DNA of 64,000 nucleotides from Haliotis cracherodii (lineage: Eukaryota): positions 60,016,001-60,080,000 of the forward strand of contig NW_027266297.1 of NCBI RefSeq assembly GCF_022045235.1, given 5' to 3'. Within the stretch, counting starts at the first letter, position 1. Each line of letters opens with the position of its first letter. The notes below the pieces were generated by a model. It was not told the origin of the DNA, did no database searches, and worked only from the letters and a program-made list of their open reading frames with translations. This document shows positions 4,240 through 49,410 of this stretch, piece after piece. Both the position numbers and the translations under genes were made by a program.

Positions 4240-5688
4240 TACTGAACCGGAAAAGAATCGTCACCATGGATATGTTTTTGAGAAACCTTATTTGTCCAAA
4301 CACTGTTAACATACTTTGAGACATATTAAAATGATGAAACTTGGCAAAACTGATCATCAAGGTTGAAATTAAAGTGTCAAATGTTCTTAAAGTGAAACAC
4401 AACACTAGTCTCTGAGAAAATGGCATCACAAGTCAGTATCTCGTGTGTCCGCCATGTGCATTGATGACTGCCGTGCAACGTCGGTACATGGAATGGATGA
4501 GGCGGTTGATGAAGGCCATAGGCACTTGAGCCCACACTCCGAGGAACGCCTGACGCAGTTCAGCTGCAGTTGTCGGCCTTGGTCGAACGTCATTCAGCCG
4601 TCTTTGAATCTCGTCCCACAGGTGCTCAATGGGATTTAAATCGGGACTGAGGGTAGGTCACTGCATGGTTCTGGTACTATTCTGCTGGAGGAAGTCTCTT
4701 GTTGCTCTCGCAGTGTGGGCAGGGGCGTTATCATGCTGAAACTCGTGGTTGCGGCGACGTGCCAAAGGGGGGATAGCGTGTGGTCAAGACTTGGTAAATG
4801 TACCGAGCTGCTGTGACACCATTGCCTCTCCCTGGACCGATGTTCTGGAAGACCACAGGGGCGACCCTCTGTGCAAGACTAATTCCACCCAAAACCATGA
4901 TGCTCGAACCACCCCACGAGTCTCTTTCAACAACACAAGCATCCGAATAACGTTCGCCACGGCGTCGCCAGACTCTCTCTCTCTTTGCCATCTGCTGTTG
5001 AGATACAGTAACGGCTCTCGTCTGAGGAGAGGACTCTTCTCCACTGCTGGTGGCACCAATGCTGGTGCTGTGTTGCCCACTAACGACGGTCCCAGAATTG
5101 GTCCTCGGTGTGGTCTGTAACAGTGGACGTGTCTGCTCGTCAATCGTCGACGCACGGTGTCCGCACTAATGTGTGGCTGATGTGTCCCCATGGTCGGCCG
5201 AACAGTTTCCGCAGCAGTAACAAAGCGATCTTAAAGATGCTGTCGCACAATCTGACGATCATAACGTCAGGTGGTGACCCTTGGTCTTCCACTACGTGGT
5301 CGGTCATCTGTAGTGTTAGTAGTCTGGTACCGTTGCTGGAGCCTGTATGTGGTCCTTACGTGGACTTGAAATGCATTGGCTACTTGCCGGGCGGTTTGTC
5401 CAGCTTGCAATCGTCCAGTGGCCTGGTGTCGCTGATTTCTTGTCAATCTTGGCATGTGGTAGCAATTCAATACCGAATGAATGTTATCCGATCTGGGTGG
5501 ATTTTGGTGTGATGCGTTTGGGTGATCGGTTGTACTGTCATCTGCTTTGTTTTTTTATCATCAAATTTCATTTTTCCGGACAAGGTAATGTTAAATTTTA
5601 GAAACTTTGACAAAAAATACCCAGATGTTTAAATGACAACTTTTCATGCAATGTTACTTGGATGTGACGTTTCTTTTGCTGTTCAGTA
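4240..5688 (-). mobile_element. Tc1/mariner DNA transposon, full length, decayed
   Basis: TIRs TACTGAACCGGAAAAGAATCGTCAC and GTGACGTTTCTTTTGCTGTTCAGTA, flanked by TA. Encloses a transposase. Confidence 0.93.
4433..5455 (-). pseudogene. Tc1 transposase pseudogene (stops and frameshifts)
   Basis: MPRLTRNQRHQATGRLQAG...DRPRSGRPRVTT HTH region, HDNAPAH...SPDLNPIEHLWD (DD34E-type), C-terminus RRCTAVINAHGGHTRY*. Confidence 0.92.
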
Positions 5689-13131: not shown

Positions 13132-14310
13132 TTAAGGGGTAGAATCTGAACTACTTCTACGAAACGCCCTCGACCCGCGTTTTGCCATGGCTTTTAGATA
13201 GGACTTCATGGGAGACAACTTTTGTGATGACGACGAGGGTTGTTTCCCTTTAGGTGACGAAGGCTGGACAGGAGTTTGAGGATTCTGACCATTTGGTGGT
13301 GACGATCTTGGGATTGATTCATATGTTGAAACATGTAGGTCAGACCACTGGAACTGAGAAGAAGGCGGTGTAGCCAGAAAGACGTCGTTCGCGAGGAAAG
13401 GACTTGAACACAGCACAGGGGACACCAGCTCTCCGATACTGGTCGAAACTGATTCGTTCTCGACAAAGGTGATGATGGGTGGCCGGCATTTGCTATGAAG
13501 ATTTTGAATCATTTCCAGACCTTCTCGGTGTCTTGCCTTCACAAGGTCAACAGATTCAACATAGTCTAGCCCTGTTGATGTTTTCATGACGTGGTCAACT
13601 TCAGATTTATAATGATTTAACACATCCGCAGCTTCGTCCACTGGGTTCTTAGCATGTTTGAGCAGAGCGAGCTGTTGGTCCACAGACGCTTCTAACATGC
13701 TCAGCAAATCCCGTTTTGCATTTAGTACACTTTGAACATGGGATCTCGCCTGGTCTTCGATTCTTTTAACCAACAAGGCCTCCGCACCAGGCAACTCCGA
13801 GGCAACACTCTTGATCAGGTCCACGTTGTCCGACATGTGTTTGTACTTCACGTCAATCTTCTGCTGTCGTCCTGTCATGTCACTCTTCTTCTTTGACGCT
13901 ATGTCTTTCAAGGGACAGAACGAATCGTCTTCACATAACGGATGTCTTTCCTTACGACACACATCACACGTTACGCACTTGCACTTCTTGCAATAGTAGC
14001 TTGCTATCATCTTCGGGTGATGCTTGCACATCAAACTAGCGATGAGATCGGGGATCTGGGTGTTGTTGGGCAACTGATCTGCCCACTTCTCTACCGGGGC
14101 ATCAGGTCTGGGGATGTAGACTGGGTTGCGACACAGAGGGCAGTGGAATCTCTTCTCCCGCTTACAGATCTGGGCCTGGCAGACGACATGTCTGATGATG
14201 CAGACCCGGCAGAAGGAGTGAATGCAGGGGAGTGTCTTGGGGTCCCTGTACACCTCCAGACAGATGCTGCACTCTAGTTCCACCGACACGTCGTCAGTTG
14301 GGTCCATCAT
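13132..14310 (-). CDS. TRIM-family E3 ubiquitin ligase (RING, B-box, coiled coil; TRIM56/TRIM2/3-like N-terminus), 392 aa, single coding exon
   Basis: C3HC4 RING CSICLEVYRDPKTLPCIHSFCRVC...CPLCR, B-box CKHH...YYCKKCKCVTCDVCRKERH, helical region, S/P/K-rich tail. Acceptor TTGTTTCAG lies directly before the ATG at 14310. Confidence 0.93.
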   Translation of the reverse strand: MMDPTDDVSVELECSICLEVYRDPKTLPCIHSFCRVCIIRHVVCQAQICKREKRFHCPLCRNPVYIPRPDAPVEKWADQLPNNTQIPDLIASLMCKHHPKMIASYYCKKCKCVTCDVCRKERHPLCEDDSFCPLKDIASKKKSDMTGRQQKIDVKYKHMSDNVDLIKSVASELPGAEALLVKRIEDQARSHVQSVLNAKRDLLSMLEASVDQQLALLKHAKNPVDEAADVLNHYKSEVDHVMKTSTGLDYVESVDLVKARHREGLEMIQNLHSKCRPPIITFVENESVSTSIGELVSPVLCSSPFLANDVFLATPPSSQFQWSDLHVSTYESIPRSSPPNGQNPQTPVQPSSPKGKQPSSSSQKLSPMKSYLKAMAKRGSRAFRRSSSDSTP

Positions 14311-14533
14311 CTGAAACAAGAGGGTATGCAAAGGTTCTCTGACCAAAAGGGTTATATTTTATACCAATGCCAAGCCTATAACACACAGTAACAAATATGT
14401 GATGCAATATAACACAGCTGCAGACTGATTTAGGAAACTTGTATAACGCACAACTAACATTTGTACAGTTCCAACACCCAAATGACAGGAACCAAATAAT
14501 ACCTTAGTATGACAAAAATATCAATGTCTGATT

Positions 14534-21345: not shown

Positions 21346-22384
21346 TCAAGCATTCAGATCAGATAGTCCCTATATCTCAGTTATCTCATGCTAGTACCAG
21401 TTCTTAATCCCCATTGTATTTTACATTAGCGGACATCCAGGACAAGCCACGCAACTATGTCACTTCTCAGTATTACTGTTGTATATATTTATTACTTAAT
21501 CTGTGTCCGATGACCTTGGATGTATAAGCATTAGTCCAGAGACAAAAATAACAAGGTTCACCCTTAGCATAGCTTGGGTTAGGCCAGGTGCCCATGGCAC
21601 GAACGCAACAACCACTACCACTATGTGCTGACCCTGGCACAAAACACTGCTTGTTCATCTAACTGTACACAGTAAATACATTGTACTTGTATATAACCAA
21701 GCCATCGACACTATGTTGTTACTTCCTACCGACAACCGTACACCGATCGACCCCTTTGCGTGTAGGAATATGCACGTCACGTCAACAACACGTCACGTCA
21801 CGTCACGTCACGTCAACGTTAATTCAAAGTCACGTGTGTGTGCAACCCAAGAATGTTGGTTGAAAATTTCAGTCGAATCCAATACACATACAGTGTAAAT
21901 CACTACACAGAATACAGAATTGTGCAGGTGCGTGTGCGAGTGCGTGTGCGAGAGCGTGTGCGTGTGCGTATGCCAGTGCGTGTGCGAGTGCGTGTGCAGC
22001 TGCGCGTACGTGTGCGTGTGCGAGTGCGTATGCGGAGAGGCGGGGAGGAGGTCTGGGTAGGCATGTTGTGCTTATGTAATCGGTGTTTATTGGTAATTTG
22101 AGGTGAAACTGGACTCACCACATAACAAATCTGACGTTTCATCGGCTTCATTATACCCCAGGCAATCCCCAGCCCCGGGCATACAATATGCCCCAACCTA
22201 TCCCCCGGATGTTTTATTTACCCTTGTATTATGTACGACATTGCTGCCAGCTGTAAGAGTGTCGTAGATTCTACGTCCGCTTCTCCCGGTTGAACCAACC
22301 CGTTCACGTGTGTAGTCCGCTTGCTTCATCTCAACACGTCAACGTGCGTACATCTTCGCATACGTATCTATCTGTTTACATATA

Positions 22385-22940
22385 AACTCGCTGCCTATCT
22401 ACCTGCGTGCATAATTACTCGCTGCCTATCTACCTGCGTGCATAATTACTCTCTGCATATCTATCTGCGTACATAATTACTCGCTGCCTATCTACCTGGG
22501 TACATAATTACTCTCTGCATATCTACCTGGGTACATAATTACTCGGTGCCTATCTATCTGCGTACATAATTACTCGCTGCCTATCTACCTGGGTACATAA
22601 TTACTCGCTGCCTATCTATCTGCGTACATAATTACTCGCTGCCTATCTACCTGGGTACATAATTACTCGCTGCCTATCTACCTGGGTACATAATTACTCG
22701 CTGCCTATCTATCTGCGTACATAATTACTCGCTGCCTATCTATCTGCGTACATAATTACTCGCTGCCTATCTACCTGGGTACATAATTACTCGCTGCATA
22801 TCTACCTGCGAGCATAATTACTCGCTGCATATCTACACCTGGGTACATAATTACTCTCTGCATATCTACCTGGGTACATAATTACTCGCTGCATATCTAC
22901 CTGTGTACATAATTACTCGCTGCATATCTACCTGCGTACA
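22385..22940. repeat. 31-bp minisatellite
   Basis: Unit TACATAATTACTCGCTGCCTATCTACCTGGG. Confidence 0.95.
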
Positions 22941-23247
22941 TATCTGCTTGCTTTCTCATCTATCTGCATATCTATCTACCTGCGTACATATCTTCTTACT
23001 TACATATATATCTGCTTACATACCTACGTACATATATACTACATCATATACCTACATATACCTATCTACTTACTTTCATATCTATCTGCATATCTGTCTT
23101 CCTCTTTACATAAATACCTGCTAACATACCTACCCACTTACATAAATTTCTGCGTGCATACCTACCCACTTACATAAAAACTTGAGTACATACATACCAA
23201 CTTACATAAATACCTGCGTAGATACCTACCCACTTACATAAATACTT

Positions 23248-23537
23248 GGGGGCACGGGTGGCCAAGTCGTCTAAGGCGCCGCGATTCGCTGTGCAGAGTT
23301 GCGTCCCTTGGGCACGTCCCTTGGCCACGTCCCTTGGGCACGCCAGAAACCTATGAATATGGGTTTCTTTCCCGGTTCGCCACGATTATGTTTCTAGGTT
23401 TGTCAGCACCATACCCGTAGTCATGGGTTTCACCGAAGTGGTAAACGTCTGAGAACTGCATCACTTCGGGCTTTCCTCCCACATTAAGCTGATACGCCGC
23501 GATATAACTGGAATAGAGTTAAACCCTACTCACTCAC
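23248..23537 (+). mobile_element. SINE family B inserted in a ~32-bp minisatellite (23105-23665)
   Basis: Head GGGGGCACGGGTGGCCAAGTCGTCTAAGGCGCC, internal triplication of GTCCCTTGGGCAC. Confidence 0.9.
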
Positions 23538-24179
23538 TACATAAATACCTGCATACATACCTGCCCACTTACATAAATACGTGCGTACATACATGTACCT
23601 ACCCACTTACATAAATACCTGCGTACATACCTACCCACTTACATAAATACCTGCGTACACACCTACTTGCGTATATATCTAGCTGTTTACATACCTACGT
23701 ACTTACATACATATAATATCGTATACCTGCTTACATATCTAACTGAGATCCACCTGCGGACATATGTATACTTATATACCTACCTATCTATTTATCTTAC
23801 ATATCGACATATATCTGCCTGCTTAGATATCTAACTGAGATCCACCTGCGGACATATGTATACTTAACTACCTACCTATATATCTATCTTACATATCGAC
23901 ATATATCTGCCTGCTTAATTATCTATCTGTACGCTTATCTGTCTCTTAACCCATCTGCCTTCTTACAGCTCTAAGCACTTACATAATTATTATGTACTGC
24001 TTACATAAATACCTGTCTGGATGTCTATCTGCATACATATGTACCGGTATAATATTTTACCTGCATACATACATGGATACATATCCATCTGCATACAAGT
24101 CTACCAGCATACACATCTATATGATCACACTTTACGTGTCGACGAATCGCTTACATATCTACCTGCTTATACATGCATC

Positions 24180-25235
24180 TTCTGGCTTACTTACCAACTT
24201 ACTGTTCTACATCTATAATGGCTAAATATCTATCTGCTTATAATGTATACCTACACCTGTTGCCTTACTTACCAACTTACTGTTCTACATCTATAATGGC
24301 TAAATATCTATCTGCTTATAATGTATACCTACACCTGTTGCCTTACTTACCAACTTACTGTTCTACATCTATAATTGCTAAATATCTATCTGCTTATAAT
24401 GTATACCTACACCTGCTGCCTTACTTACCAACTTACTGTTCTACATCTATAATTGCTAAATATCTATCTGCTTATAATGTATTCCTACACCTGTTGCTTA
24501 CTTACCAACTTACTGTTCTACATCTATAATTGCTAAATATCTACTGGCTTACAATGTATACCTACACCTGCTGGCTTACTTACCAACTTACTGTTCTACA
24601 TCTATAATTGCTAAATATCTATCTGCTTATAATGTATTCCTACACCTGTTGCTTACTTACCAACTTACTGTTCTACATCTATAATTGCTAAATATCTACT
24701 GGCTTACAATGTATACCTACACCTGCTGGCTTACTTACCAACTTACTGTTCTACATATATAACTGCTAAATATCTACTGGCTTACAATGTATACCTACAC
24801 CTGCTGGCTTACTTACCAACTTACTGTTCTACACATAAAATTGCTAAATATCTACTTGCTTACAATGTATACCTACACCTGTTGCTCAATTACCAACTTA
24901 CTGTTCTACATATATAATGGCTAAACATCTTCCTGCTTACAATGTATACCTACACCTGCTGCCTTGCTTACCAACTTACTGTTCTACATCTATAATTGCT
25001 AAATATCTACTGGCTTACAATGTATACCTACACCTGCTGCCTTACTTACCAACTTACTGTTCTACATCTATAATTGCTAAATATCTACCTGCTTATACCT
25101 ACACCTGTTGCTTACTTACCAACTTACTGTTCTACATCTATAATTGCTAAATATCTACTGGCTTACAATGTATACCTACACCTGTTGCTTAATTACCAAC
25201 TTACTGTCCCACATATATACTTGCTAAATATCTAC
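24180..25235. repeat. ~78-bp minisatellite
   Basis: Unit CTTACTTACCAACTTACTGTTCTACATCTATAATTGCTAAATATCT... Confidence 0.95.
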
Positions 25236-25246
25236 TTGTAGTCTTT

Positions 25247-27963: not shown

Positions 27964-29118
27964 CTTCTTCAATGAGGAATTCAGTGCCATTTCAAAAGAA
28001 ACTTTAAAAGGTTGTCAACAGCTCCTCATCCTTGACAAAAATAATTCAGACGAACAAATAATCATTTTGTTATTTCCTAATTTCATTCATGCAGTCATTG
28101 TAACATGTTACCTGATTTATATTTGCTCATACAAGTGTTCCCGGATATGACCGATGCTGTGACTAATGTTTGTAACAGTCAGTATTCTCGAGGTGTATTC
28201 AGGTCAACAGCCTGCTGCAAGGTCGCGTAAACAGACGTGCATGGAATGTAGGACCACCTCTGACACATCCTCTTTGCCTCATGATCATGAATGTGTTTGT
28301 GTGTGGATGCAAAGTCACATTCAAGTGTGATAATGGTATATGATTGTGACCCTGGCTACACGCTTTACTCCAACTGGTGGTATTATCGAACTGTTATTGC
28401 CCTGTGATAAACACTTTTATTTATTTTGATAAACACTCCTTTAAGATGAAATATTAATAAATGTTAAATGAACTACTTGTGTGTAAAATTCATATTGGTC
28501 TGCGTAAAATTTACATTACTATTGATTGGTAGATATTCATCAACAATCTATCAATCATATATTTCTCGAAATGAACCTCCCACGGTGGTAAAGAAGAAAA
28601 AGTTTCTTTACATGACAATAAACTTGTAGTTTATAAGATGTCGGTTATACTATAAGTATTTTTGGTGACATTTAAACATTTTGCTTGAAAACCTGTGTGA
28701 ACATGTTAACAGTACATGTACATATACATAAGCACGCACGGACATATATAGTCACCCTCAAAGGTACTTATCTATCATACATATGAATTTTGCAAGGTTT
28801 TTTATATTTTTGTTCATTTCTGGTACTCTTGTTATTTTTAGGAAAGTGTGTATATTTATTCGAGGTTATTTGTATCTGGATTCACTAACAGCTTCACATT
28901 TAAACAGGTAGTGGAATTCATCGGCTGTAGCTGGCGACATACACAATTTTACATGTCCTAAATTCTCTACCTTTACAAAGCCAACGGCCAACTTCGACGG
29001 GTAGATTACGTTTGTAGATTCTATTTTTTAGAATAGGATGACGAATTTGCTTAGATGGCAGAAGAAAGTTTTCAAATGACGGGATATCTTTTAAATATTT
29101 ATAATAATACCCTTTTGA

Positions 29119-30418
29119 ACATCCACCCCAGCATCTAACAACCAACACAGCATCCAACATCCACCCCAGCATCCAACATCCACCCCAGCATCCAACATCC
29201 ACCCCAGCATCTAACATCCACCCCAGCATCCAACATCCACCCCAGCATCTAACAACCGACACAGCATCCAACATCCACCCCAGCATCCAACAACCGACAC
29301 AGCATCCAACATCCACCCCAGCATCCAACATCCACCCCAGCATCCAACATCCACCCCAGCATCTAACAACCGACACAGCATCCAACATCCACCCCAGCAT
29401 CTAACAACCGACACAGCATCCAACATCCACCCCAGCATCCAACAACCGACACAGCATCCAACATCCACTCCAACATCCAACAACCGACACAGCATCCAAC
29501 ATCCGACACAGCATCCAACATCCACCCCAGCATCCAACAACCGACACATCATCCAACATCCACCCCAGCATCCAACAACCGACACAGCATCCAACATCCA
29601 CCCCAGCATCTAACAACCAACACAGCATCCAACATCCACCCCAGCATCCAACAACCGACACAGCATCCAACAACCGACACAGCATCCAACATCCAACAAC
29701 CGACACAGCATCCAACAACCGACACAGCATCCAACATCCGACACAGCATCCAACATCCACCCCAGCATCCAACAACCGACACAGCATCCAACATCCACCC
29801 CAGCATCCAACAACCGACACAGCATCCAACATCCACCCCAGCATCCAACAACCGACACAGCATCCAACATCCACTCCAACATCCAACAACCGACACAGCA
29901 TCCAACATCCGACACAGCATCCAACATCCACCCAAGCATCCAACAACCGACACATCATCCAACATCCACCCCAGCATCCAACAACCGACACAGCATCCAA
30001 CATCCACCCCAGCATCCAACAACCAACACATCCGACCCAGCATCCAACAACCGACACAGCATCCAACATCCACCCCAGCATCCAACAACCGACACAGCAT
30101 CCAACATCCACCCCAGCATCCAACAACCGACACAGCATCCAACATCCACCCCAGCATCCAACAACCGACAAAGCATCCAACATCCACCCCAGCATCTAAC
30201 ATCCACCCCAGCATCTAACAACCGACACAGCATCCAACATCCACCCCAGCATCTAACAACCGACACAGCATCCAACATCCACTCCAGCATCCAACAACCG
30301 ACACAGCATCCAACATCCACTCCAACATCCAACAACCGACACATCATCCAACATCCACTCCAGCATCCAACAACCGACACAGCATCCAACATCCACTCCA
30401 GCATCTAACAACCGACAC
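29119..30418. repeat. 19-bp two-variant minisatellite ending just upstream of lipase exon 2
   Basis: ACATCCACCCCAGCATCCA and ACAACCGACACAGCATCCA. Confidence 0.95.
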
Positions 30419-30449: not shown

Positions 30450-30766
30450 GATGGTTTATTTCTTCCTCCTCTCCGGAGCCAGGACGTGTCTGCTTCACCA
30501 GCCTGGGACGCTGCTACAGCAACGCCGCCCCCTACAACAATGTGCCGGGGTTCTTACCAGAGTCCCCGGCCATACAACAGGTGCAGTTCTGGCTCTACAC
30601 ACGGGGCGACACAAACCGCCCACAGACGATTTCGGCTGATTCGGATGCCAGTATTACAACGTCCAATTTCGATGCCCATAGGGAGACGAAGGTCATCATC
30701 CATGGGTTTGGGGAGTGGGGCAACAAGTCCTGGGTGAGGATCATGAAGGACACCATTCTTACACAC
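30450..30766 (+). CDS. Lipase exon 2
   Basis: TTCTTCAG| ...VCFTSLGRCYSNAAPY...LPESP...FWLYTR...SNFDAHRETKVIIHGF...DTILTH |GTGAGT. Confidence 0.92.
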
Positions 30767-31389
30767 GTGAGTTGCTCTTGGCACCATTCTTACACACTTG
30801 AACTCATATTGGCATCATTCTTACACACGTGATATCATGTTGGCATCGTTCTTACACACGTGAGATCATGTTGGCATCATTCTTACACACGTGAGATCAT
30901 GTTGGCATCATTCTTACACACGTGATATCATGTTGGCATCATTGCTACACACGTGAGATCATGTTGGCATCATTCTTACACACGTGAGTTCATGTAGACA
31001 TCATTCTTACACACGTGAGATGATATTGGCATCATTCTCACACACGTGAGATCATGTTGGCATCATTCTTACACACGTGAGTTCATATTGGCATCATCCT
31101 TGCACACGTGAGTTCATGTTGGCATCATTCTTACACACGTGAGATCATTTTGGCATCATTCTTACACACGTGAGTTCATGTAGACATCATTCTTACACAC
31201 GTGAGATGATATTGGCATGATTCTTACACACGTGAGATCATGTTGGCATCATTCTTACACACGTGAGTTCATATTGGCATCATCCTTGCACACGTGAGTT
31301 CATGTTGGCATCATTCTTACACATGTGAGATCATATTGGCATCATTTTTGCACACGTGAGTTCATGTAGGCATCATTCTTACACACGTT

Positions 31390-31673
31390 GGGGGCACCGG
31401 TGGCCCAGTCGTCTAAGGCGCCGCGATTCGCTGTGCAGAGTTGCATCCCTTGGGCACGCCAGAAACCTATGATTGTGGGTTTCTTTCCCGGTTCTCCCGA
31501 ATTATGTTTCTAGGTTTGTCAGCACCATACCCGTGCTCGTGGGTTTCACCGAAGTGGTAAACGTCTGAGACCTGCGTCACTTCGAGCTTTCCTCCCACAT
31601 TAAGCTGATACGCCGTGATATAACTGGAATACTGTTAAAAGCGGCGTTAAACCTAACTCACTCACTCACTCAC
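31390..31673 (+). mobile_element. SINE family B within the donor array
   Basis: TSD TCTTACACACGT. Confidence 0.92.
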
Positions 31674-32012
31674 TCTTACACACGTGAGTTCATATTGGCA
31701 TTATTCTTACGCACGTGAGTTCATGTTGGCATCATTCTTATACACGTGAGTTCATGTAGGCACCATTCTTACACACGTGAGTTCATATTGGCATTATTGT
31801 TTTACATGTGAGTTCCTGTTGGCTTTACTCTGTCACACGTGAGTTCATGTTGGCATCATTCTTACACACGTGAGACCATATTGGCATCATTCTTACGCAC
31901 GTGAGTTCATGTTGGCATCATTCTTACGCACTTGAGTTCATGTTGGCATCATTCTTACGCACGTTGGTTCGTTTAAGAACTGCTTTTCACTTTGTTGAGT
32001 TCTTGGAGTATG

Positions 32013-32180
32013 GGGGCGGTCGGAAAGTCTAGTGGTTAAAGCGTTCGCTCGTCGCGCCGAAGACCCGGGTTCGATTCCCGAAATGGGTACAATGTGTGAA
32101 GCCCATTTCTGGTGTCCCCCGCCGTGATATTGCTGGAATATTGCTACAAGCGGGGTAAAACCATACTCACTCACTCACTC
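32013..32180 (+). mobile_element. SINE family A
   Basis: TSD TTGGAGTATG. Confidence 0.92.
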
Positions 32181-33216
32181 ATTGGAGTATGAAGCTGGAT
32201 CTGTGTGAACGTCCAATGGAAAAACCGTATATCGTGTAAACTTCACATCTAAAGATTAGATTGACGGCATTGCTTCACACGTGAGTTCATATTAGCACCA
32301 TTCCTACAAATCGGAGATCATACTAGTACCATTCCTTCAAGTGTTCATTTTGGCACTATTCTTTCAAATGTGAGTTCATATTGACACCATTCTTTCACAC
32401 AATATTTCATATTGTCACCATTACTTCACATGTGAGTTCATATTGGCACATTACTTCACATGTGAGTTCATATTGGCACCATTACTTCACATGCGAGTTC
32501 ATATTGGCACGATTACTTTACTTGTGAGTTCATATTGGCACATTCCTTCACATGTGAGTTCATATTGGCACCATAACTTTACATGTGAGTTCATATCGGC
32601 ACATTCCTTCACATGTGAGTTCATATTGACACCATTCTTTCACACAATATTTCATATTGGCACCATTACTTCACACAATATTTCATATTGGCACCATTCT
32701 TATACACATGCGTTCATATTGGCATGATTCTGTCACACTCTATTTCATATTGGCACCGTTACTACACATGTGAGTTCATATTGGCATCATTCCTATACAC
32801 ATGAGTTTATCTTGGCACCATTCACCTACTCGCTTACCTGGTGTCATCACTGTTAGATCCTCAGTCACAGACATGCCCACGATGCAGTCGGAGTCGTAAA
32901 TCGACTCTGCTTTCGGCAGATGAATATAGAAAGGTTTTTTTGTCACTTATATTTACACACGAGAATAAATATTAGAACCGTTCGTACACACGAGAGTTCA
33001 CATTGACACCATTCTTACACACATGAGGTCATATTGGCACCATTCTCACACATGTGAGTTCACATTTGCTGTTTTTTTCAAGTGAATGAGTGACTGATTT
33101 TAGTACTTATGTACTTGCCACATTGAATAGAGTGACATTGGTTTCGACAAAGATGTTTATTATATTGATGGATGGGATGGGATTATAGTGTGCTCTGCGT
33201 TTCCGTTTTGATACAG

Positions 33217-33448
33217 GATAATGTCAACGTGATCATCGTGAACTGGCGAGAAGGTGCCAAGCCCCCCGTGTACTTTCAGAGCGTCGCCAACACGCGAGTG
33301 GTGGGGACTCTATTGGAGAAACTCATCACGAGACTCAACACAGTGACAAGAGCCTCTTTTCAGAGCTTCCATTTGATTGGTCACAGCCTAGGGGCGCACG
33401 TTGCTGGCTATGCTGGGATGACGATAAATACAATTGGTAGGATAACAG
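33217..33448 (+). CDS. Lipase exon 3 (catalytic Ser)
   Basis: DNVNVIIVNW...YFQSVANTRVVG...FHLIGHSLGAHVAGYAG...GRIT. Acceptor ATACAG, donor G|GTACGT. Confidence 0.95.
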
Positions 33449-33541
33449 GTACGTCATTGTGAAACCATGTCTTTTAATTAATTGTAAAATCAAAATGAAG
33501 GAGAATATTGCTTTCAGCAACCGTCATTTTTATATCTACAG

Positions 33542-33658
33542 GAATGGATCCAGCAGGTCCAAATTTCGACGATTTCGGAAACCAGGTCATCTTGGATGCA
33601 AGTGATGCCAGCTTTGTGGATATCATACACACAAATGCCAAACCTCTGCGCAACTTTG
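33542..33658 (+). CDS. Lipase exon 4 (catalytic Asp)
   Basis: GMDPAGPNF...LDASDASFVDIIHTN. Donor G|GTAAGC. Confidence 0.95.
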
Positions 33659-34079
33659 GTAAGCTGAAAAACAATATACCAATATACTCAATAAAACAAT
33701 GTTATAAGGTACAACTGTCTCCCAGGAATGTATCAACAGTTACAAAATTAATGTAAAGAGTTCTGACACGCTTATCGGCTGTTCATATACATGGAATACA
33801 TAGAAATATGGAGACCGAAAGTTCCAGGACTAACCCTTTTGTAAATGACTGTAATGTCATAAGGTGATGCTAGTCTAAGAATGCGAGCTCGCCACGAATA
33901 GCTGTAACATTGACGATGCGGCGTAAAGCAATATTTATTTATATCTTTAAGAATGTGAGAAAACTGTGGGTTTGAAAATTAATTGTCAGAGACGCATCCC
34001 TCATGGACCTTGCCACCCTCTCAGCGACCTGAGTGAACCTACCAGACCACACCCATGGGAGAGCCATATATTTGGGAGA

Positions 34080-36752
34080 TGTTTCTGTGACTGTGGTTCA
34101 GGGTATGGTATACAGAGGACTATCTATGATCTGTGGTTGTGTTTCAGGGTATGGGATACAGAGGACTATCTATGATCTGTGGTTGTGTTTCAGGGTATGG
34201 TATACAGAGGACTATCTATTATCTGTGATTGTGTTTCAGGGTATGGTATACAGAGGACTATCTGTGATCTGTGATTGTGTTTCAGGGTATGGGATACAGA
34301 GGACTATCTATGATCTGTGATTGTGTTTCGGGATACGGGACTATGTATGATCTGTGATTGTGTTTCGGGATACAGAGGACTATCTATGATCTGTGATTGT
34401 GTTTCAGGGTATGAGATATATAGGACTATCTATGATCTGTGATTGTGTTTCAGGGTGTAGGATACAGAGGACTGTCTATGATCTGTGATTGAGTTTCAGG
34501 GTAAGGGATACAGAGGACTATCTATGATCTGTGTCTGTGTTTCGGGATACAGAGGACTATCTATGATCTGTGATTGTGTTTCAGGGTATGAGATATATAG
34601 GACTATCTATTATCTGTGATTGTGTTTCGGGGTATGGGATACAGAGGACTATCTATTATCTGTGATTGTGTTTCAGGGTATGGGATACAGAGGACTATCT
34701 ATAATCTGTGATTGTGTTTCGGGATACGGGACTCTCTATGATCTGTGATTGTGTTTCAGGGTATGAGATATATAGGACTATCTATGATCTGTGATTGTGT
34801 TTCAGGGTATGGGATACAGAAGACTGTCTATGATCTGTGGTTGAGTTTCAGGGTAAGGGATACAGAGGACTATCTATGATCTGTGATTGTGTTTCGGGAT
34901 ACAGTGAGTGAGTGAGTGAGTATGGTTTTACGCCACTTTTAGCAATATTCCAGCAATATCACGGCGGGGGACACCAGAAATGAGCTTCACACATTGTACC
35001 CATGTCGGGAATCGAACCCGGGTCTTCGGCGTGACGAGCGAACTCTTTAACCACTAGGCTACCCGACCGCCCCGTTTCGGGATACAGAGGACTATCTATG
35101 ATCTGTGATTGTGTTTCAGGGTATGGGATAGGGAGGACTGTCTATGATCTGTGATTGAGTTTCAGGGTAAGGGATACAGAGGACTATCTATGATCTGTGA
35201 TTGTGTTTCAGGATAAGGGATACAGAGGACTATCTATGATCTGTGATTGTGTTTCGGGATACGGGACTATCTATTATCTGTGATTGTGTTTCAGGGTATG
35301 AGATATATAGGACTATCTATTATCTGTGATTATGTTTCAGGGTATGGGATACAGAGGACTATCTATTATCTGTGATTGTGTTTCAGGGTATGGGATACAG
35401 AGGACTATCTATGATCTGTGATTGTGTTTCGGGGTAAGGGATACAGAGGACTATCTATTATCTGTAATTGAGCTTCAGGGTATGGTATACAGAGGACTAT
35501 CTATGATCTGGGATTGTGTTTGGGGATACAGAGGACTATCTATGATCTATGATTGTGTTTCAGGGTATGGGATACAGAGGACTACCTATTATCTGTGATT
35601 GTGTTTCGGGGTAAGGGATACAGAGGACTATCTATGATCTGTGATTGTGTTTCGGGGTAAGGGATACAGAGGACTATCTATGATATGTGACTGTGTTTCG
35701 GGATACAGGACTATCTATGATCTGTGATTGTGTTTCAGGGTATGAGATATATAGGACTATCTATTATCTGTGATTGTGTTTCAGGGTATGAGATACAGAG
35801 GACAATCTATGATCTGTGATTGTGTTTCAGGGTATGAGATACAGAGGACAATCTATGATCTGTGATTGTGTTTCGGGATACGGGACTATCTATGATCTGT
35901 GATTGTGTTTCGGGATACGGGACTATCTATGATCTGTGATTGTGTGTCAGGATACGGGACTCTCTAAGATTCGGATTGTGTTTCAGGGCATGCAATACAG
36001 AGGACTATCTATGATCTATGATTGTGTTTCAGGGCATGCAATACAGAGGACTATCTATGATCTGTGATTGTGTTTCAGGGCATGCAATACAGAGGACTAT
36101 CTATGATCTGTGATTGTGTTTCAGGGTATGGGATATAGAAGACTATCTATTATCTGTGATTGTGTTTCAGGGTATGGGATACAGAGGACTGTCTATGATC
36201 TGTGATTGTGTTTCAGGGCATGCAATACAGAGGACTATCTATGATCTGTGATTGTGTTTCAGGGTATGGGATACAGAGGACTAACTATTATCTGTGATTG
36301 TGTTTCAGGGTATAGGATACAGAAGACTATCTATGATCTGTGATTTTGTTTCGGCATACGGGACAATCTATGATCTGCGATTGTGTTTCAGGGTATGGGA
36401 TACAGAGGACTATCTATTATCTGTAATTGTGTTTCAGGGTATGGGATACAGAGCACTATCTATGATATGTGATTGTGTTTCGGGATACGGGACTATCTAT
36501 GATCTATGATTGTGTTTCAGGGTATGGGATACAGTGGAATATCTATGATCTGTGATTGTGTTTCAGGGCATGGGATTCAGAGGACTATCTATGATCAGTG
36601 ATTGTGTTTCGGGATACAGGGTTATCTATGATCTGTGAATGTGTTTCAGGGTATGGGATTCAGAGGACTATCTATGATCTGTGATTGTGTTTCGGGATAC
36701 AGGACTATCTATTATCTGTGATTGTGTTTCAGGGTATGGGATACAGAAGACC
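34080..36752 (+). repeat. ~46-bp tandem array whose unit spans the exon-5 acceptor site
   Basis: Unit TCTATGATCTGTGATTGTGTTTCAG|GGTATGGGATACAGAGGACTA, with shorter variants lacking the AG. The last copy is the real exon start. Confidence 0.95.
34904..35073 (-). mobile_element. SINE family A within the acceptor array
   Basis: TSD GTTTCGGGATACA. Confidence 0.93.
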
Positions 36753-36852
36753 ACTGGTCATGTGGACTTCTTCCCTAATGGCGGTGTCAATCAGCCGGGG
36801 TGTCCCGACACCACCAGGGGCATCCTGCTCCTCCTCAACGGCGACACTGCAG
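36733..36852 (+). CDS. Lipase exon 5
   Basis: (G)YGIQKTTGHVDFFPNGGVNQPGCPDTTRGILLLLNGDTA. Phase 1/1, donor G|GTAGGT. Confidence 0.95.
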
Positions 36853-37439
36853 GTAGGTGATGTACGGCTCTCGGTCCCTCCCTTCCAACACAAAAATACC
36901 TTACTTGAGCAGCGTCACGTTCATATCACTGGCCCTCTACTCCGCAATGTCACACAGACACACATGTCACAATTACAAATGATGCCCTCGAGTTTCAATT
37001 TGCTGATCAAGAAAAAGAAAGAATGTTCATGTTTACTGTTATTTGTCTTACGGGCAACTGTATTTTTCGAACCCTTAAAAAATATGTCTGTATTACTGAA
37101 ATGAGAGTTCATGTGAGCATTTTTGTCAACATGAGTGAGTGAGTGAGTGAGTGAGTGAGTGAGTGAGTGAGTGAGCATATCGTCTAGATGTGGGAAGAAA
37201 GCCCGACGTGATGCAGGTCCTCGTTCACGGCTTTGATGCGGCGGAGGAGCACGGGTATTTGCATTTGGAAAAGAGAGGAATAATATCCATAAAATCACAG
37301 ATTAACATAATTTTATTCGACAGTTGTTTCAATGGCGATCAGTTAGATCAGTGCCCGAAGCATTATCGAAAGTTATTTCCTCCATCGTTGACACAATTAA
37401 GAATAACAATAACAACAACAATAAAATAATAATTTTCAC

Positions 37440-38690
37440 AGTTTTCTTAAACGAACCAAGGATGTGGGACATAAGCTCAATGTCAGTGATGATTTTCTTG
37501 ATGGTTCTGTACTGCTGGACTGTACAGTGAGTGAGTGAGTATGGTTTTACGCCGCTTTTAGCAATATTCCAGGAATATCACGGCGGGGGACACCACAAAT
37601 GGGATTCACACATTGTACCCATGTCGGGAATCGAACCCGGTTCGTCGGCATGACGAGCGAACGCTTTAACCACTAGGCTACCCGACTGGACGGTACAGAA
37701 ATGAGTGTCAACCAAGCGAAATGCCATATCAAATCGGCCCAAACTCAGCTCTTCAAGGAGGGGCTATCTGAACGACCACTGCATAGAGGTTATGTGCAGT
37801 GTGTTGAGAAGATCAGCAACCCCGCAGAGTTCTTCGTTTGGGTGAAGTCGTCTGGCCTGAAAAGTGAAACAGAAGGTTTTGTGTTTGCTGCTCAGGACCA
37901 GTCAATTCCCACTCGAAACCGTCAATGTGTGATTTTGCATCAAAATGTTAATATGAAATGTAGATAATACAATGAATTTAATGAGACTGTCCAACACATT
38001 GTCAGCGGATGCCCCGCTTTGGCACAAACACAGTATCTTAAACGACATGATGGTGTAGCTCGATCATTTTATTACCGTCTCCGCCATGGTTGTGGTTTTG
38101 ACACAGAGGTCCACCCATGGTACACCCCGGAGTATGTAGAGAGCGTCATGGAAAATGATAAATACCAAATTCTTTGGAATAGGCCCGTTTACAGCCTTAG
38201 ACGTATCCAGTCCAACAAACCTGATCTTGTCCTTTTTGATAAATCCAATGAAATCATTTATAGAATTGAATTTTCTGTCCTTCTGACACTCATGTAATGT
38301 CCATAATTCAGTAAAAACATGGCAAATATGCAGACCTCGCTTTCGAAATGTCACGCTTGCATCCCAAGTACCAAGTTGTCCGACTCCCCATTGTTCTCGG
38401 TGCCTTAGGTTTGGTACCTCCCAATCTGTTGACTGACATCGGGAGAGTACCCGGGTTTGCTACCAGGAATACAGCCCTTCTGACAATCTGGGTAATGCAG
38501 AAGGCTGCAGTGTTGGGGAGTCTTCACATTCTCCGAAAAGTTCTGGGTGGGTTTGACAAGGCAGGGCTTCCTGGGAAAGTCCCATTCGCTGTCTAGGCTG
38601 CGTGTAGAGAGGGCAAGGGCCCTGAGCTGATGATTAGCCTAACCAGCCTGGCTGTGCCAGGATCACCCAAACCCTCCTTGCTGCATTATA
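37440..38690 (+). mobile_element. R4/Dong-like non-LTR retrotransposon, 3' fragment (zinc knuckle and RLE), decayed
   Basis: ETEGFVFAAQDQ..TR, ETVQHIVSGCPALA..YLKRHD, NKPDLVLFD, PIVLGALG, MQKAAVLGS. Confidence 0.85.
37528..37685 (-). mobile_element. SINE family A nested in the LINE fragment
   Basis: TSD CTGGACKGTACAG. Confidence 0.9.
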
Positions 38691-38729
38691 TATTTTTAAT
38701 CTTTTTTTAATATGTTATTTCATGTTCAG

Positions 38730-38956
38730 CGGCTGTGACGTCATTGGCTTGTAGTCACGAACGAGGATTCGTGTATTTCATCGCTTCTATAAACGGGACC
38801 CTTTTTGAGGCGTATCCTTGCGCCAGTAAGTCCGCCTATCAGCGAGGCCTGTGCAGGTCATGTGACAGCGGGTGTGCATACATGGGTTACTACGCCGATG
38901 AAACTAGTCCCAGAGGTACATTCTATCTGTCAACGGGATCCGATTGGATACAATAT
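38730..38956 (+). CDS. Lipase exon 6 (catalytic His)
   Basis: AVTSLACSHERGFVYFIASIN...YPC...CRSCDSGCAYMGYYA...FYLST. Donor TAT|GTAAGT. Confidence 0.93.
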
Positions 38957-39109
38957 GTAAGTAGGCATGGAAACATGTTGCACAGGAGTCAGATTCTTTA
39001 GGCATGTAGACTTCGGATCAGGATTCGTAGTTCGAACCCAAGTTAAATGTTCACCTCCACCACCTACGCATATTATTAGTCATGACTTCTTTAGTTGCAG
39101 TACACGGTT

Positions 39110-41268: not shown

Positions 41269-41437
41269 GGGCGGTTGGGTAGCCTGGTGGTTAAAGTGTT
41301 CGCTCGTCACGCCGAAGACCCTGGTTCGATTCCCGACATGGGTACAATGTGTGAAGCCCATTACTGGTGTCCCCCGCCGTGATATTGCTGGAATATTGCT
41401 AAAAGTGGAGTAAAACCTCATTCACTCACTCACTCAC
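41269..41437 (+). mobile_element. SINE family A
   Basis: TSD TCTTTGTTTTC. Confidence 0.9.
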
Positions 41438-41664
41438 TCTTTGTTTTCAGTCGCTATATGGCTGAAATAATGCCACTGTGACGTTTAAGTTTGACTTTTT
41501 TCTCACATACGATTTATTTGCAAGAGTACAAAACGGTACAGGCATAAAACGTTTGATTAATTACTTTTCACATTATAACGTGAGTTTGTTATATTCAGCA
41601 AGGGAATACACCCATTAGACGAGACTCCTTATTTTAATTCATTTGCTGATTCCCCGACCCTTAA

Positions 41665-47704: not shown

Positions 47705-47761
47705 ATGATGACTGTACAACCCTCATACTCAGTGGTCACGTTGATTGTCATCCTGCTACAC
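47705..47761 (+). CDS. EGF-TM receptor 1, probable signal-peptide exon (runs into the gap)
   Basis: Acceptor TTTCTTGCAG at 47682. MMTVQPSYSVVTLIVILLH... Confidence 0.55.
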
Positions 47762-48279
47762 NNNNNNNNNNNNNNNNNNNNNNNNNNNNNNNNNNNNNNN
47801 NNNNNNNNNNNNNNNNNNNNNNNNNNNNNNNNNNNNNNNNNNNNNNNNNNNNNNNNNNNNNNNNNNNNNNNNNNNNNNNNNNNNNNNNNNNNNNNNNNNN
47901 NNNNNNNNNNNNNNNNNNNNNNNNNNNNNNNNNNNNNNNNNNNNNNNNNNNNNNNNNNNNNNNNNNNNNNNNNNNNNNNNNNNNNNNNNNNNNNNNNNNN
48001 NNNNNNNNNNNNNNNNNNNNNNNNNNNNNNNNNNNNNNNNNNNNNNNNNNNNNNNNNNNNNNNNNNNNNNNNNNNNNNNNNNNNNNNNNNNNNNNNNNNN
48101 NNNNNNNNNNNNNNNNNNNNNNNNNNNNNNNNNNNNNNNNNNNNNNNNNNNNNNNNNNNNNNNNNNNNNNNNNNNNNNNNNNNNNNNNNNNNNNNNNNNN
48201 NNNNNNNNNNNNNNNNNNNNNNNNNNNNNNNNNNNNNNNNNNNNNNNNNNNNNNNNNNNNNNNNNNNNNNNNNNNNNNN
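47762..48279. other. Assembly gap
   Basis: Run of N. Confidence 1.
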
Positions 48280-48701
48280 CCCCACACACACCGCTAAGCA
48301 CCACCATCACCCTCTCCCCCTTATCTAGTTAGATACTTGTACCCCTACTATTGATCAAGGTCACAACGTACACCAGATATATATATAACTGTCACTGAAA
48401 CCAAGTCGTGACAAAGGGTTTCACTATGGAAGTGCGATGGTTTAGATCTCGATTAGGCTTCAATACATCATTAAGTGTTTAGACAGGCGTAGCTCTCTAT
48501 TCACGAGGAGTTTTATACATCCTGTATTTGCCTGTACTAGGAATAAACACTTCTCCTTTAAGACTTATTTGCACTGTCCGTTTCACGTGCATTATCTTCC
48601 TTTTCCGTTAATTCAACGTTGTAATGTCGTGAATTTAATATAAGTGTTCCCATTGTTTCTGTTTGAGTTCAAATCAAGATGTATGCATATTTTCCGTTTA
48701 G

Positions 48702-49283
48702 CGCAGAATGACCCGTCTTCTCCGGGTGGTACTTGCAAAGAAGGATGTAAACAAGGTTTCTATGGCGACGGGTGCAACCGGTCTTGTCGAAACCAATGTA
48801 TAAGTAGTAGGTGTCACGTGTCCCGGGACACCGGAAGCGCCGTTTGCGACACTGGGTGCATTCCGGGATTTCGAGGACGTTATTGTGAGAGAAAATGTCC
48901 CAGACGATGCGCAGAGTGCACCAACACCATGTGTCCCAAATGTACTAGTGACTCGTGGTACGGGGCAAACTGTAGTAAGTACTGTAGCCATTGTAATGGC
49001 GAGTCCTGCTTTAAGAACGGAAACTGCAAACGAGGCTGCACCGGAGGGAACGTTGGACCAGGATGCAACACTACGCCTACCTGCAGTTTCCGGTGTTCTG
49101 AATGCGAAGGAAGCTCGGATACGTGTTCGACGTGCAAACCTGGTTACTATGGCAACAGCTGTGTCAGCAACTGCAGTTCTAACTGTATCGGGTCTGTCTG
49201 CCACTTTTCAAACGGGACATGTGCGCAAGGGTGTATTTCTGGATGGGTCGGACATGATTGTACGGTGCAGCTGCTGGTTGATG
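48702..49283 (+). CDS. EGF-TM receptor 1 (MEGF10/CED-1/SCARF-like), EGF-repeat exon
   Basis: Repeated C..GC..G(F/Y/W).G..C...C motifs. Phase 1/1, donor G|GTGAGT. Confidence 0.9.
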
Positions 49284-49410
49284 GTGAGTGGTCAATAGCA
49301 GCGGTTACCGTCACTCCTCATCCGTTTATTGTTAGAATGTTTGTTTGTTTTTTTGATTGATTGTTGTTTAACGCCGCACAGGTTGGTGGACACCGGGTCT
49401 TGCATCCAGA

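Follow-up and report, generated by a model that had tools for sequence, protein, structure and literature searches.

Minisatellites whose repeat unit spans an exon-intron boundary have been described in cephalochordates and in humans. In amphioxus, such repeats were named "mirages" in the gene Adh3 (Cañestro et al. 2002, as cited in PMC3087553). They also occur in the amphioxus genes for troponin C, the globins BflGb6 and BflGb9, and PGBD5, at 5′ as well as 3′ boundaries and with no aberrant messenger RNAs (mRNAs) (PMC3087553, PMC3902484). Human donor-side minisatellites are found in intervening sequence (IVS) 7 of F7, which carries five to nine copies of a 37-base-pair (bp) unit, in the interferon-inducible gene 6-16, with 25 pseudo-sites, and in CBS IVS13, LMNB2 and PDGF (PMC1557585). 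Mutagenesis of F7 showed that only the most upstream of its identical donors is used, through scanning in the 5′-to-3′ direction (PMC1557585). From abalone, an intron with 62 copies of a polymorphic 27-bp unit has been published (PMC6905558). Here we describe a gene of the pancreatic-lipase family (PF00151) of Haliotis cracherodii, two introns of which are occupied mostly by repeats that span a splice junction. The gene lies on the + strand, at positions 30450-39001 of a window of 64,000 nucleotides (nt) (NCBI RefSeq assembly GCF_022045235.1, contig NW_027266297.1, positions 60,016,001 to 60,080,000). All coordinates below refer to this window and, where no strand is given, to its + strand. 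We consider it likely that the two arrays are independent minisatellites of the mirage type which act as essentially neutral intron ballast, and that their terminal copies are still used in splicing. The locus adds a large, twofold case to a known class of repeats and introduces no new principle or mechanism.

Three traits of mirages are present at this locus: head-to-tail units of minisatellite size, a unit made up of exonic and intronic sequence, and a terminal copy that is, as judged by homology, the authentic junction. As in amphioxus, the unit spans a 5′ or a 3′ boundary, many units keep their AG or GT, and the authentic copy stands at the exon edge. The turnover is likewise typical of minisatellites, with edge units remaining outside homogenisation. 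The differences lie in size, host and type of evidence. Each array here holds about 50 copies, whereas two globin mirages consist of one to six duplicates (PMC3087553). The host is a mollusc and not a cephalochordate, and a donor and an acceptor array share one gene. Moreover, the amphioxus work demonstrated both the splicing and the length instability directly, whereas the higher-order repeats described below point to recent turnover only indirectly.

The human donor repeats provide a second point of comparison. Here as there, the exon-intron boundary runs through the first monomer, and all pseudo-donors lie downstream of the authentic one. In contrast to this locus, the listed human cases (5-25 copies) are donor-side only (PMC1557585). 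The F7 unit includes 4 exonic nt, compared to 16 in the abalone donor unit, and it is our assumption that first-donor scanning would operate here too. With these findings, molluscs join cephalochordates and humans as hosts of mirage minisatellites. The locus is a natural experiment in splice-site choice, with about 35 intact and 13-14 locally identical copies per site type, far above human F7. It would lend itself to a test, in a protostome, of whether the first donor is found by scanning and the last acceptor chosen.

Anatomy of the lipase gene and its two arrays

Exon borders were taken from a reading of the sequence and then checked singly against Pfam PF00151 and lipases in the PDB, so that all protein comparisons were made one exon at a time. 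The exon numbering presumes an upstream exon 1, which was not located and probably encodes the signal peptide. Together, five exons cover positions 10-332 of the 336 positions of PF00151. Exon 2 (30450-30766; PF00151 10-95) is entered in phase 2 and left in phase 0. It ends with the residues MKDTILTH and passes into intron 2 at CAC|GTGAGT, with the genuine donor GTGAGT at 30767-30772. Exon 3 (33217-33448; PF00151 101-176) carries the catalytic-serine motif GxSxG in the form GHSLGAH. Exon 4 (33542-33658; PF00151 178-212) ends with LRNF plus the G of a split glycine codon and is followed by the donor GTAAGC. Exon 5 (36733-36852; PF00151 218-242) follows the acceptor TTTCAG|GG at 36732/36733, starts with GYGIQKTTGHVDFFPNGG... 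and contains GHVDFFPNGG, which matches the conserved GH.DF.PNGG block of the lipase domain. Exon 6 (38730-39001; PF00151 259-332) ends either at the stop codon at 38999-39001 or at a strong donor, TAT|GTAAGT at 38957, which stands 45 nt before the in-frame stop; one further short exon may follow downstream.

The exon borders agree with the structural homologues. Residues 12-96 of exon 2 align to residues 2-88 of a pancreatic lipase chain in the PDB, and residues 2-77 of exon 3 to residues 99-174. Residues 1-26 of exon 5, beginning with its very first residue, align to residues 216-241 of human pancreatic lipase. The PDB lipases are colinear with the abalone protein across both array junctions, without insertions or deletions. 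Full-length homologues from a representative search cover the same five exons with no piece missing. Among named proteins of the collection, those closest to the lipase exon come from molluscs; for exon 3, the best short relative is only 74% identical. Judged by this homology, the exon-side terminal copies are the genuine splice sites of both arrays, since they keep the reading frame colinear with the homologues.

Intron 2 (30767-33216; 2,450 nt) is made up of about 1,590 nt of a 31-bp array (about 65% of the intron), two insertions of a short interspersed element (SINE) and a final 148 nt of unique sequence. Tandem Repeats Finder (TRF) called a period of 31 with about 50 copies in four blocks (30734-31388, 31670-31964, 32268-32823 and 32953-33066), and its calls extend into exon sequence here as well as in the array of intron 4. 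The unit joins the final 16 nt of exon 2 to the opening 15 nt of the intron, and 30751-30781 is the true junction unit. All 48 complete decoys lie downstream of the true donor at 30767. The GT is kept in 35 and GTGAG in 33 of them; the 9-mer of the true donor recurs in 13, and three retain the exonic 16-mer exactly.

The blocks of the donor array differ in their state of preservation. Block 1 (30751-31388) comprises the true unit, 19 complete decoys and one decoy cut by a SINE. It is homogeneous and contains a higher-order repeat of 186 bp (6 units) that is 97.8% identical. The decoy donor nearest to the true site (30798) reads TT instead of GT, and this is the sole unit without GT among the 19 complete units of the block. 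The second and fifth nearest decoy donors read GTGATA, and the others among the six nearest read GTGAGA, with G+5 kept; in view of the higher-order repeat, a general weakening of these six is at best suggested. Block 2 (31670-31964) has eight complete decoys, seven of them with GT. Blocks 3 and 4 (32268-33066), which are separated by about 130 nt of unique sequence (32824-32952), have 21 decoys, of which 10 possess GT, and represent older, more diverged copies. Use of a decoy donor adds a multiple of 31 nt to the transcript and leads to a stop 22-26 codons beyond the end of exon 2.

Intron 4 is 3,074 nt long, about 86% of it array; both introns show that such repeats can make up most of an intron. 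The array (34084-36751) has a TRF period of 46 and about 60 copies, with variants of 37 and 39 nt and higher-order periods of 83, 175 and 352 bp. Its unit consists of 27 intronic and 19 exonic nt around the exon-5 acceptor, and the last unit (36706-36751) contains the genuine acceptor at 36732|36733 followed by the codons G-Y-G-I-Q-K. Among the 51 decoys that could be aligned, 38 are long (46 nt) and 13 are short (37 or 39 nt), with the AG deleted. YAG|G is kept in 35, all of them long units, and 14 decoys match the true site exactly over positions -10 to +10. The nearest upstream unit (36669) is one of the short ones and has no AG. Use of a decoy acceptor leads to a stop, mostly after 11 codons.

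At its other end, the first acceptor unit (34075) grades leftward into unique intron sequence, which suggests an original intron 4 of about 450 nt. The unique 5′ part (33659-34083) is presumably this original intron, the length given including its old 3′ end. The homology of the first unit to the junction extends over about 37 nt; a further 9 nt of the unit are of uncertain origin.

Each long acceptor unit also carries a donor-like GTATGG or GTAAGG one base past the AG. This is reminiscent of recursive splice sites, or ratchet points, in which a 3′ and a 5′ site abut (YAG|GTRAGT) around an exon of zero length. Clean recursive splicing was ruled out: CAG|G|GTATGG has one base between the two sites, so each step would retain a base and shift the frame.

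Taken over both arrays, intact decoys in the pre-mRNA would number about 35 for the donor and 35 for the acceptor, and use of any of them leads to a premature stop. A preliminary description of the locus, made from the letters alone, had spoken of dozens of decoy sites facing the spliceosome, and these counts bear it out. At this locus, gene predictors could easily choose a decoy.

Origin of the repeats and age of the introns

Local alignment of one unit with the other gives a score of 5; they are unrelated, which indicates that the two arrays arose independently. Each unit repeats 16-19 nt of the adjoining exon in register, a match that, on comparison of the sequences, cannot be due to chance. 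The direction of copying can be read from the conservation of the exon ends. The residues before exon 3 follow the pattern W....M...(L/I/F)L.., with L at position -3 in 71 of 90 homologues, and the start of exon 5 follows [FLY]-G-x5-G-H, with the G present in 72 of 74. The exon ends carry ancestral family residues, and the repeats were therefore copied from the exon ends and not the reverse. The preliminary description had proposed two unrelated minisatellites, each straddling an exon-intron boundary, derived from the gene's own junctions and having their exon-proximal copy as the real splice site. The TRF calls and the unit composition (16 + 15 and 27 + 19 nt) agree with this proposal, as do the alignment score and the family residues; the identity of the real splice sites is supported by the colinear Pfam and PDB matches, as predicted from sequence. 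Its further statement that the terminal copies contribute conserved lipase codons holds for the GYG...GH of exon 5, which is strongly conserved. It holds only in part for TILTH, where I and L are conserved and T and H vary, although the length is exactly colinear with the homologues.

We compared the introns with those of paralogues found in a six-frame search of the same genome, using about 3.2 kb around exon 3 of each paralogue. This search yielded 15 further lipase loci (L020-L034), mostly on the same chromosome as the window, with L031 on another contig. For exon 3, 12 of them match over the full length at 40-53% identity and three are partial matches with up to 66%. The borders of exon 3, and with them the positions of introns 2 and 3, are common to at least 12 paralogues. 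Intron 4 interrupts the same residue in six, none of which has arrays of this kind, and is absent from five (L023, L025, L027, L029 and L030), in which exons 4 and 5 are fused. In the two paralogues where intron 4 lies wholly within the compared locus it measures about 270-320 nt, compared to 3,074 nt here. Intron 2 of the paralogues measures about 590-1040 nt, compared to 2,450 nt here. Hence the introns are older than the arrays, which enlarged pre-existing introns, as the preliminary description had supposed. A minisatellite of another kind is seen in the paralogue L021, a gene on the - strand, where 11 copies of a 36-bp unit (L021:747-1157) fill most of intron 3 and end 13 nt short of the exon-4 acceptor, near the junction but not including it.

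The same comparison ruled out that the introns were gained by tandem duplication, since 12 or more paralogues have introns 2 and 3 and six have intron 4. The Rogers model of tandem duplication across AG|GT proto-splice sites, as outlined in PMC3087553, resembles the present case in that extra splice signals arise inside a gene. It differs in that the introns already existed here, and that duplications enlarged rather than created them.

Based on these findings, we propose that each array began as a short tandem duplication that by chance covered a splice junction; the introns concerned were old and at first short. The seed would have been 31 bp long over the exon-2 donor and about 37-46 bp over the exon-5 acceptor. 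Replication slippage and unequal exchange could then have amplified each seed to about 50 copies, with growth restricted to the intron side, since growth into the exon would break the lipase. Splicing most likely takes place at the exon-side terminal copies, that is, at the 5′-most donor and the 3′-most acceptor. Any use of a decoy would give a frameshifted, stop-containing RNA, which would probably be removed by nonsense-mediated decay. The arrays display the signs of ordinary minisatellite turnover, namely the higher-order repeats (186 bp in one array; 83, 175 and 352 bp in the other) and edge units that merge into unique flanks. Divergence increases from homogeneous proximal blocks to decayed distal blocks.

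Some observations weigh against this scenario of neutral ballast and normal splicing. We infer normal splicing only from precedent and from the intact reading frame. The 13 donor and 14 acceptor decoys that are locally identical to the true sites make some mis-splicing plausible, and in the human genes 6-16 and CBS the two nearest pseudo-donors are indeed used (PMC1557585). In addition, the decoy closest to the genuine site is disabled in both arrays, which hints at selection against the nearest decoys and hence at arrays that may not be strictly neutral. The joint chance that both nearest copies would be disarmed is about 1% at face value, a figure that is post hoc and treats as independent units that higher-order repeats make non-independent.

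Alternative explanations for the arrays

The preliminary description had taken two events in one gene as a sign of junction-centred amplification. In this reading, junction-straddling arrays would exceed chance in this genome because some source of mutation acts preferentially at junctions, such as breakage linked to transcription or splicing, or slippage at prone motifs. We regard this as unlikely. Two of the three arrays of this gene do straddle junctions, and the authors of the amphioxus work likewise suspected a general phenomenon (PMC3087553). The third array, in intron 1 (29118-30418), serves as an internal control: it has about 68 copies of a 19-bp unit and ends 31 nt before the exon-2 acceptor, but its unit contains no GT, resembles neither junction and is not junction-derived. 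Minisatellites are also very dense in the window, 26.9% of which lies in TRF arrays, with about 25 separate minisatellites of 17-95 bp units. Outside the lipase gene described here, about 10 further arrays with known exon context lie in introns of paralogues or neighbouring genes; several end 13-60 nt before an acceptor, and none straddles a junction.

How often random seeding would produce straddling arrays can be estimated roughly. For a seed duplication placed at random within an intron or at its edge, we took the chance of straddling either junction as about 2(L-1)/(I0+L-1), with L standing for the length of the unit and I0 for that of the original intron. With units of 31-46 bp, and with introns that originally measured about 165-450 nt, the chance comes to about 18% in intron 4 and to 14-31% in intron 2; for arrays seeded in short introns in general, roughly 10-30% would straddle. 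That one gene should have two straddlers has a chance of a few percent, yet would be expected many times over genome-wide. By this rough estimate, no special junction-targeted process would be needed. In our view, two events in one gene are not evidence for junction-centred amplification, because the neutral estimate suffices and because the locus was picked as striking, which introduces an ascertainment bias. The broader proposition, that minisatellites seeded at junctions exceed the neutral rate, form a major recurrent route of intron expansion and have their nearest decoys disarmed by selection, seems to us similarly doubtful, if marginally less so. Such an excess, if true, would suggest that some mutational process targets splice junctions.

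Less probable still is a function for the decoys, by which copy number would balance productive against decay-targeted splicing and so tune lipase expression. About 35 intact decoys of each kind, all leading to premature stops, would supply the means, and use of the nearest pseudo-donors is documented for human 6-16 and CBS (PMC1557585). In humans, an association of tandem-repeat length with splicing variation has also been reported (PMC10078293). Against this stand the silent pseudo-sites of F7, LMNB2, PDGF and the amphioxus mirages (PMC1557585, PMC3087553, PMC3902484). Among the decoys of the abalone donor array, conservation of G+1 and T+2 is 0.79 and 0.83, compared to a mean of about 0.86, and in the old block it is 0.62 compared to 0.83; on the acceptor side, thirteen units have lost the AG. 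The GT and AG of the decoys are thus no better conserved than other positions, which argues against selection to keep them. The disarmed state of the nearest decoys in both arrays and the existence of paralogues without such arrays also speak against a function.

It is very improbable that the arrays, or their length, result from mis-assembly of repeats. Long minisatellites are difficult to assemble, and in amphioxus a draft genome had one mirage assembled wrongly (PMC3087553). The copies at this locus, however, differ in a structured manner, with higher-order repeats and a gradient of divergence, the arrays pass into unique sequence at their margins, and the reading frame of the exons is preserved. 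Furthermore, both arrays are interrupted by SINEs with clean target-site duplications. One SINE, with a head resembling transfer RNA (tRNA) and an (ACTC)n tail, lies within a donor unit at 31389-31675 and is flanked by a target-site duplication of 10-11 bp (31378-31388 and 31675-31685). Another of the same family lies in a unit of the acceptor array at 34905-35074 on the - strand, between duplicates of 13 bp (34892-34904 and 35075-35087). It follows that the arrays are real, predate the insertions and are not very young. At most, assembly error might be limited to copy number.

Further copies of this SINE family are located at about 32003-32185 (+), 37527-37690 (-) and 41270-41440 (+). Four of the five aligned copies have a common core of about 170 nt, and the copy at 31389-31675 is longer, with a more divergent head. 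ARAGORN called no tRNA in the interval 29-39 kb, and the tRNA-like heads of the SINEs were judged by eye.

A genome search was also made with both arrays. The 46-bp array had no match outside its own locus, and the 31-bp array had weak matches, at 68-73%, to arrays on two other chromosomes (L015 and L017). These arrays (L015:1457-1754, with a 31-bp unit, and L017:1413-2865, with a 30-bp unit) each have a 15-nt half in common with the donor unit, and no lipase exon stands beside either; the likeness is probably a matter of chance among abundant minisatellites. A dispersed satellite family was accordingly rejected as the source of the repeats. The reverse direction would have the final codons of exon 2, or the opening codons of exon 5, stem from a dispersed satellite that was there beforehand. 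This reading can draw on those shared 15-nt halves, but it is the least credible alternative and largely refuted by the family-typical residues at exactly colinear positions of the exon ends, given also that a similarity of 68-73% is within chance for a repeat-rich genome of 1.18 Gb, that the other arrays have no lipase exon next to them, and that the 46-bp array is unmatched elsewhere.

Other features of the window

Additional features were observed outside the lipase gene. Four or five C-rich arrays are found at 22365-25236; their minus-strand units hold donor-like motifs, CAGGTA or GGTAAGT, and no adjoining minus-strand exon was identified there. Remnants of a Tc1/mariner-type transposase occupy 4400-5560 on the - strand, with a weak PF01498 match and a DDE-like tail recognised by eye. 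An open frame of 408 amino acids (13135-14358, - strand) has an N-terminal RING finger (PF13445, PF00097). A run of N at about 47760-48280 represents a gap or masked sequence. Two EGF-like exons were also detected. The first, at 48644-49357 (+), has a weak match to a teneurin-EGF domain in Pfam. The second is cysteine-rich and lies at 59453-60010 on the - strand, and an array with 22 copies of a 55-bp unit (60043-61249) ends about 60 nt upstream of its acceptor.

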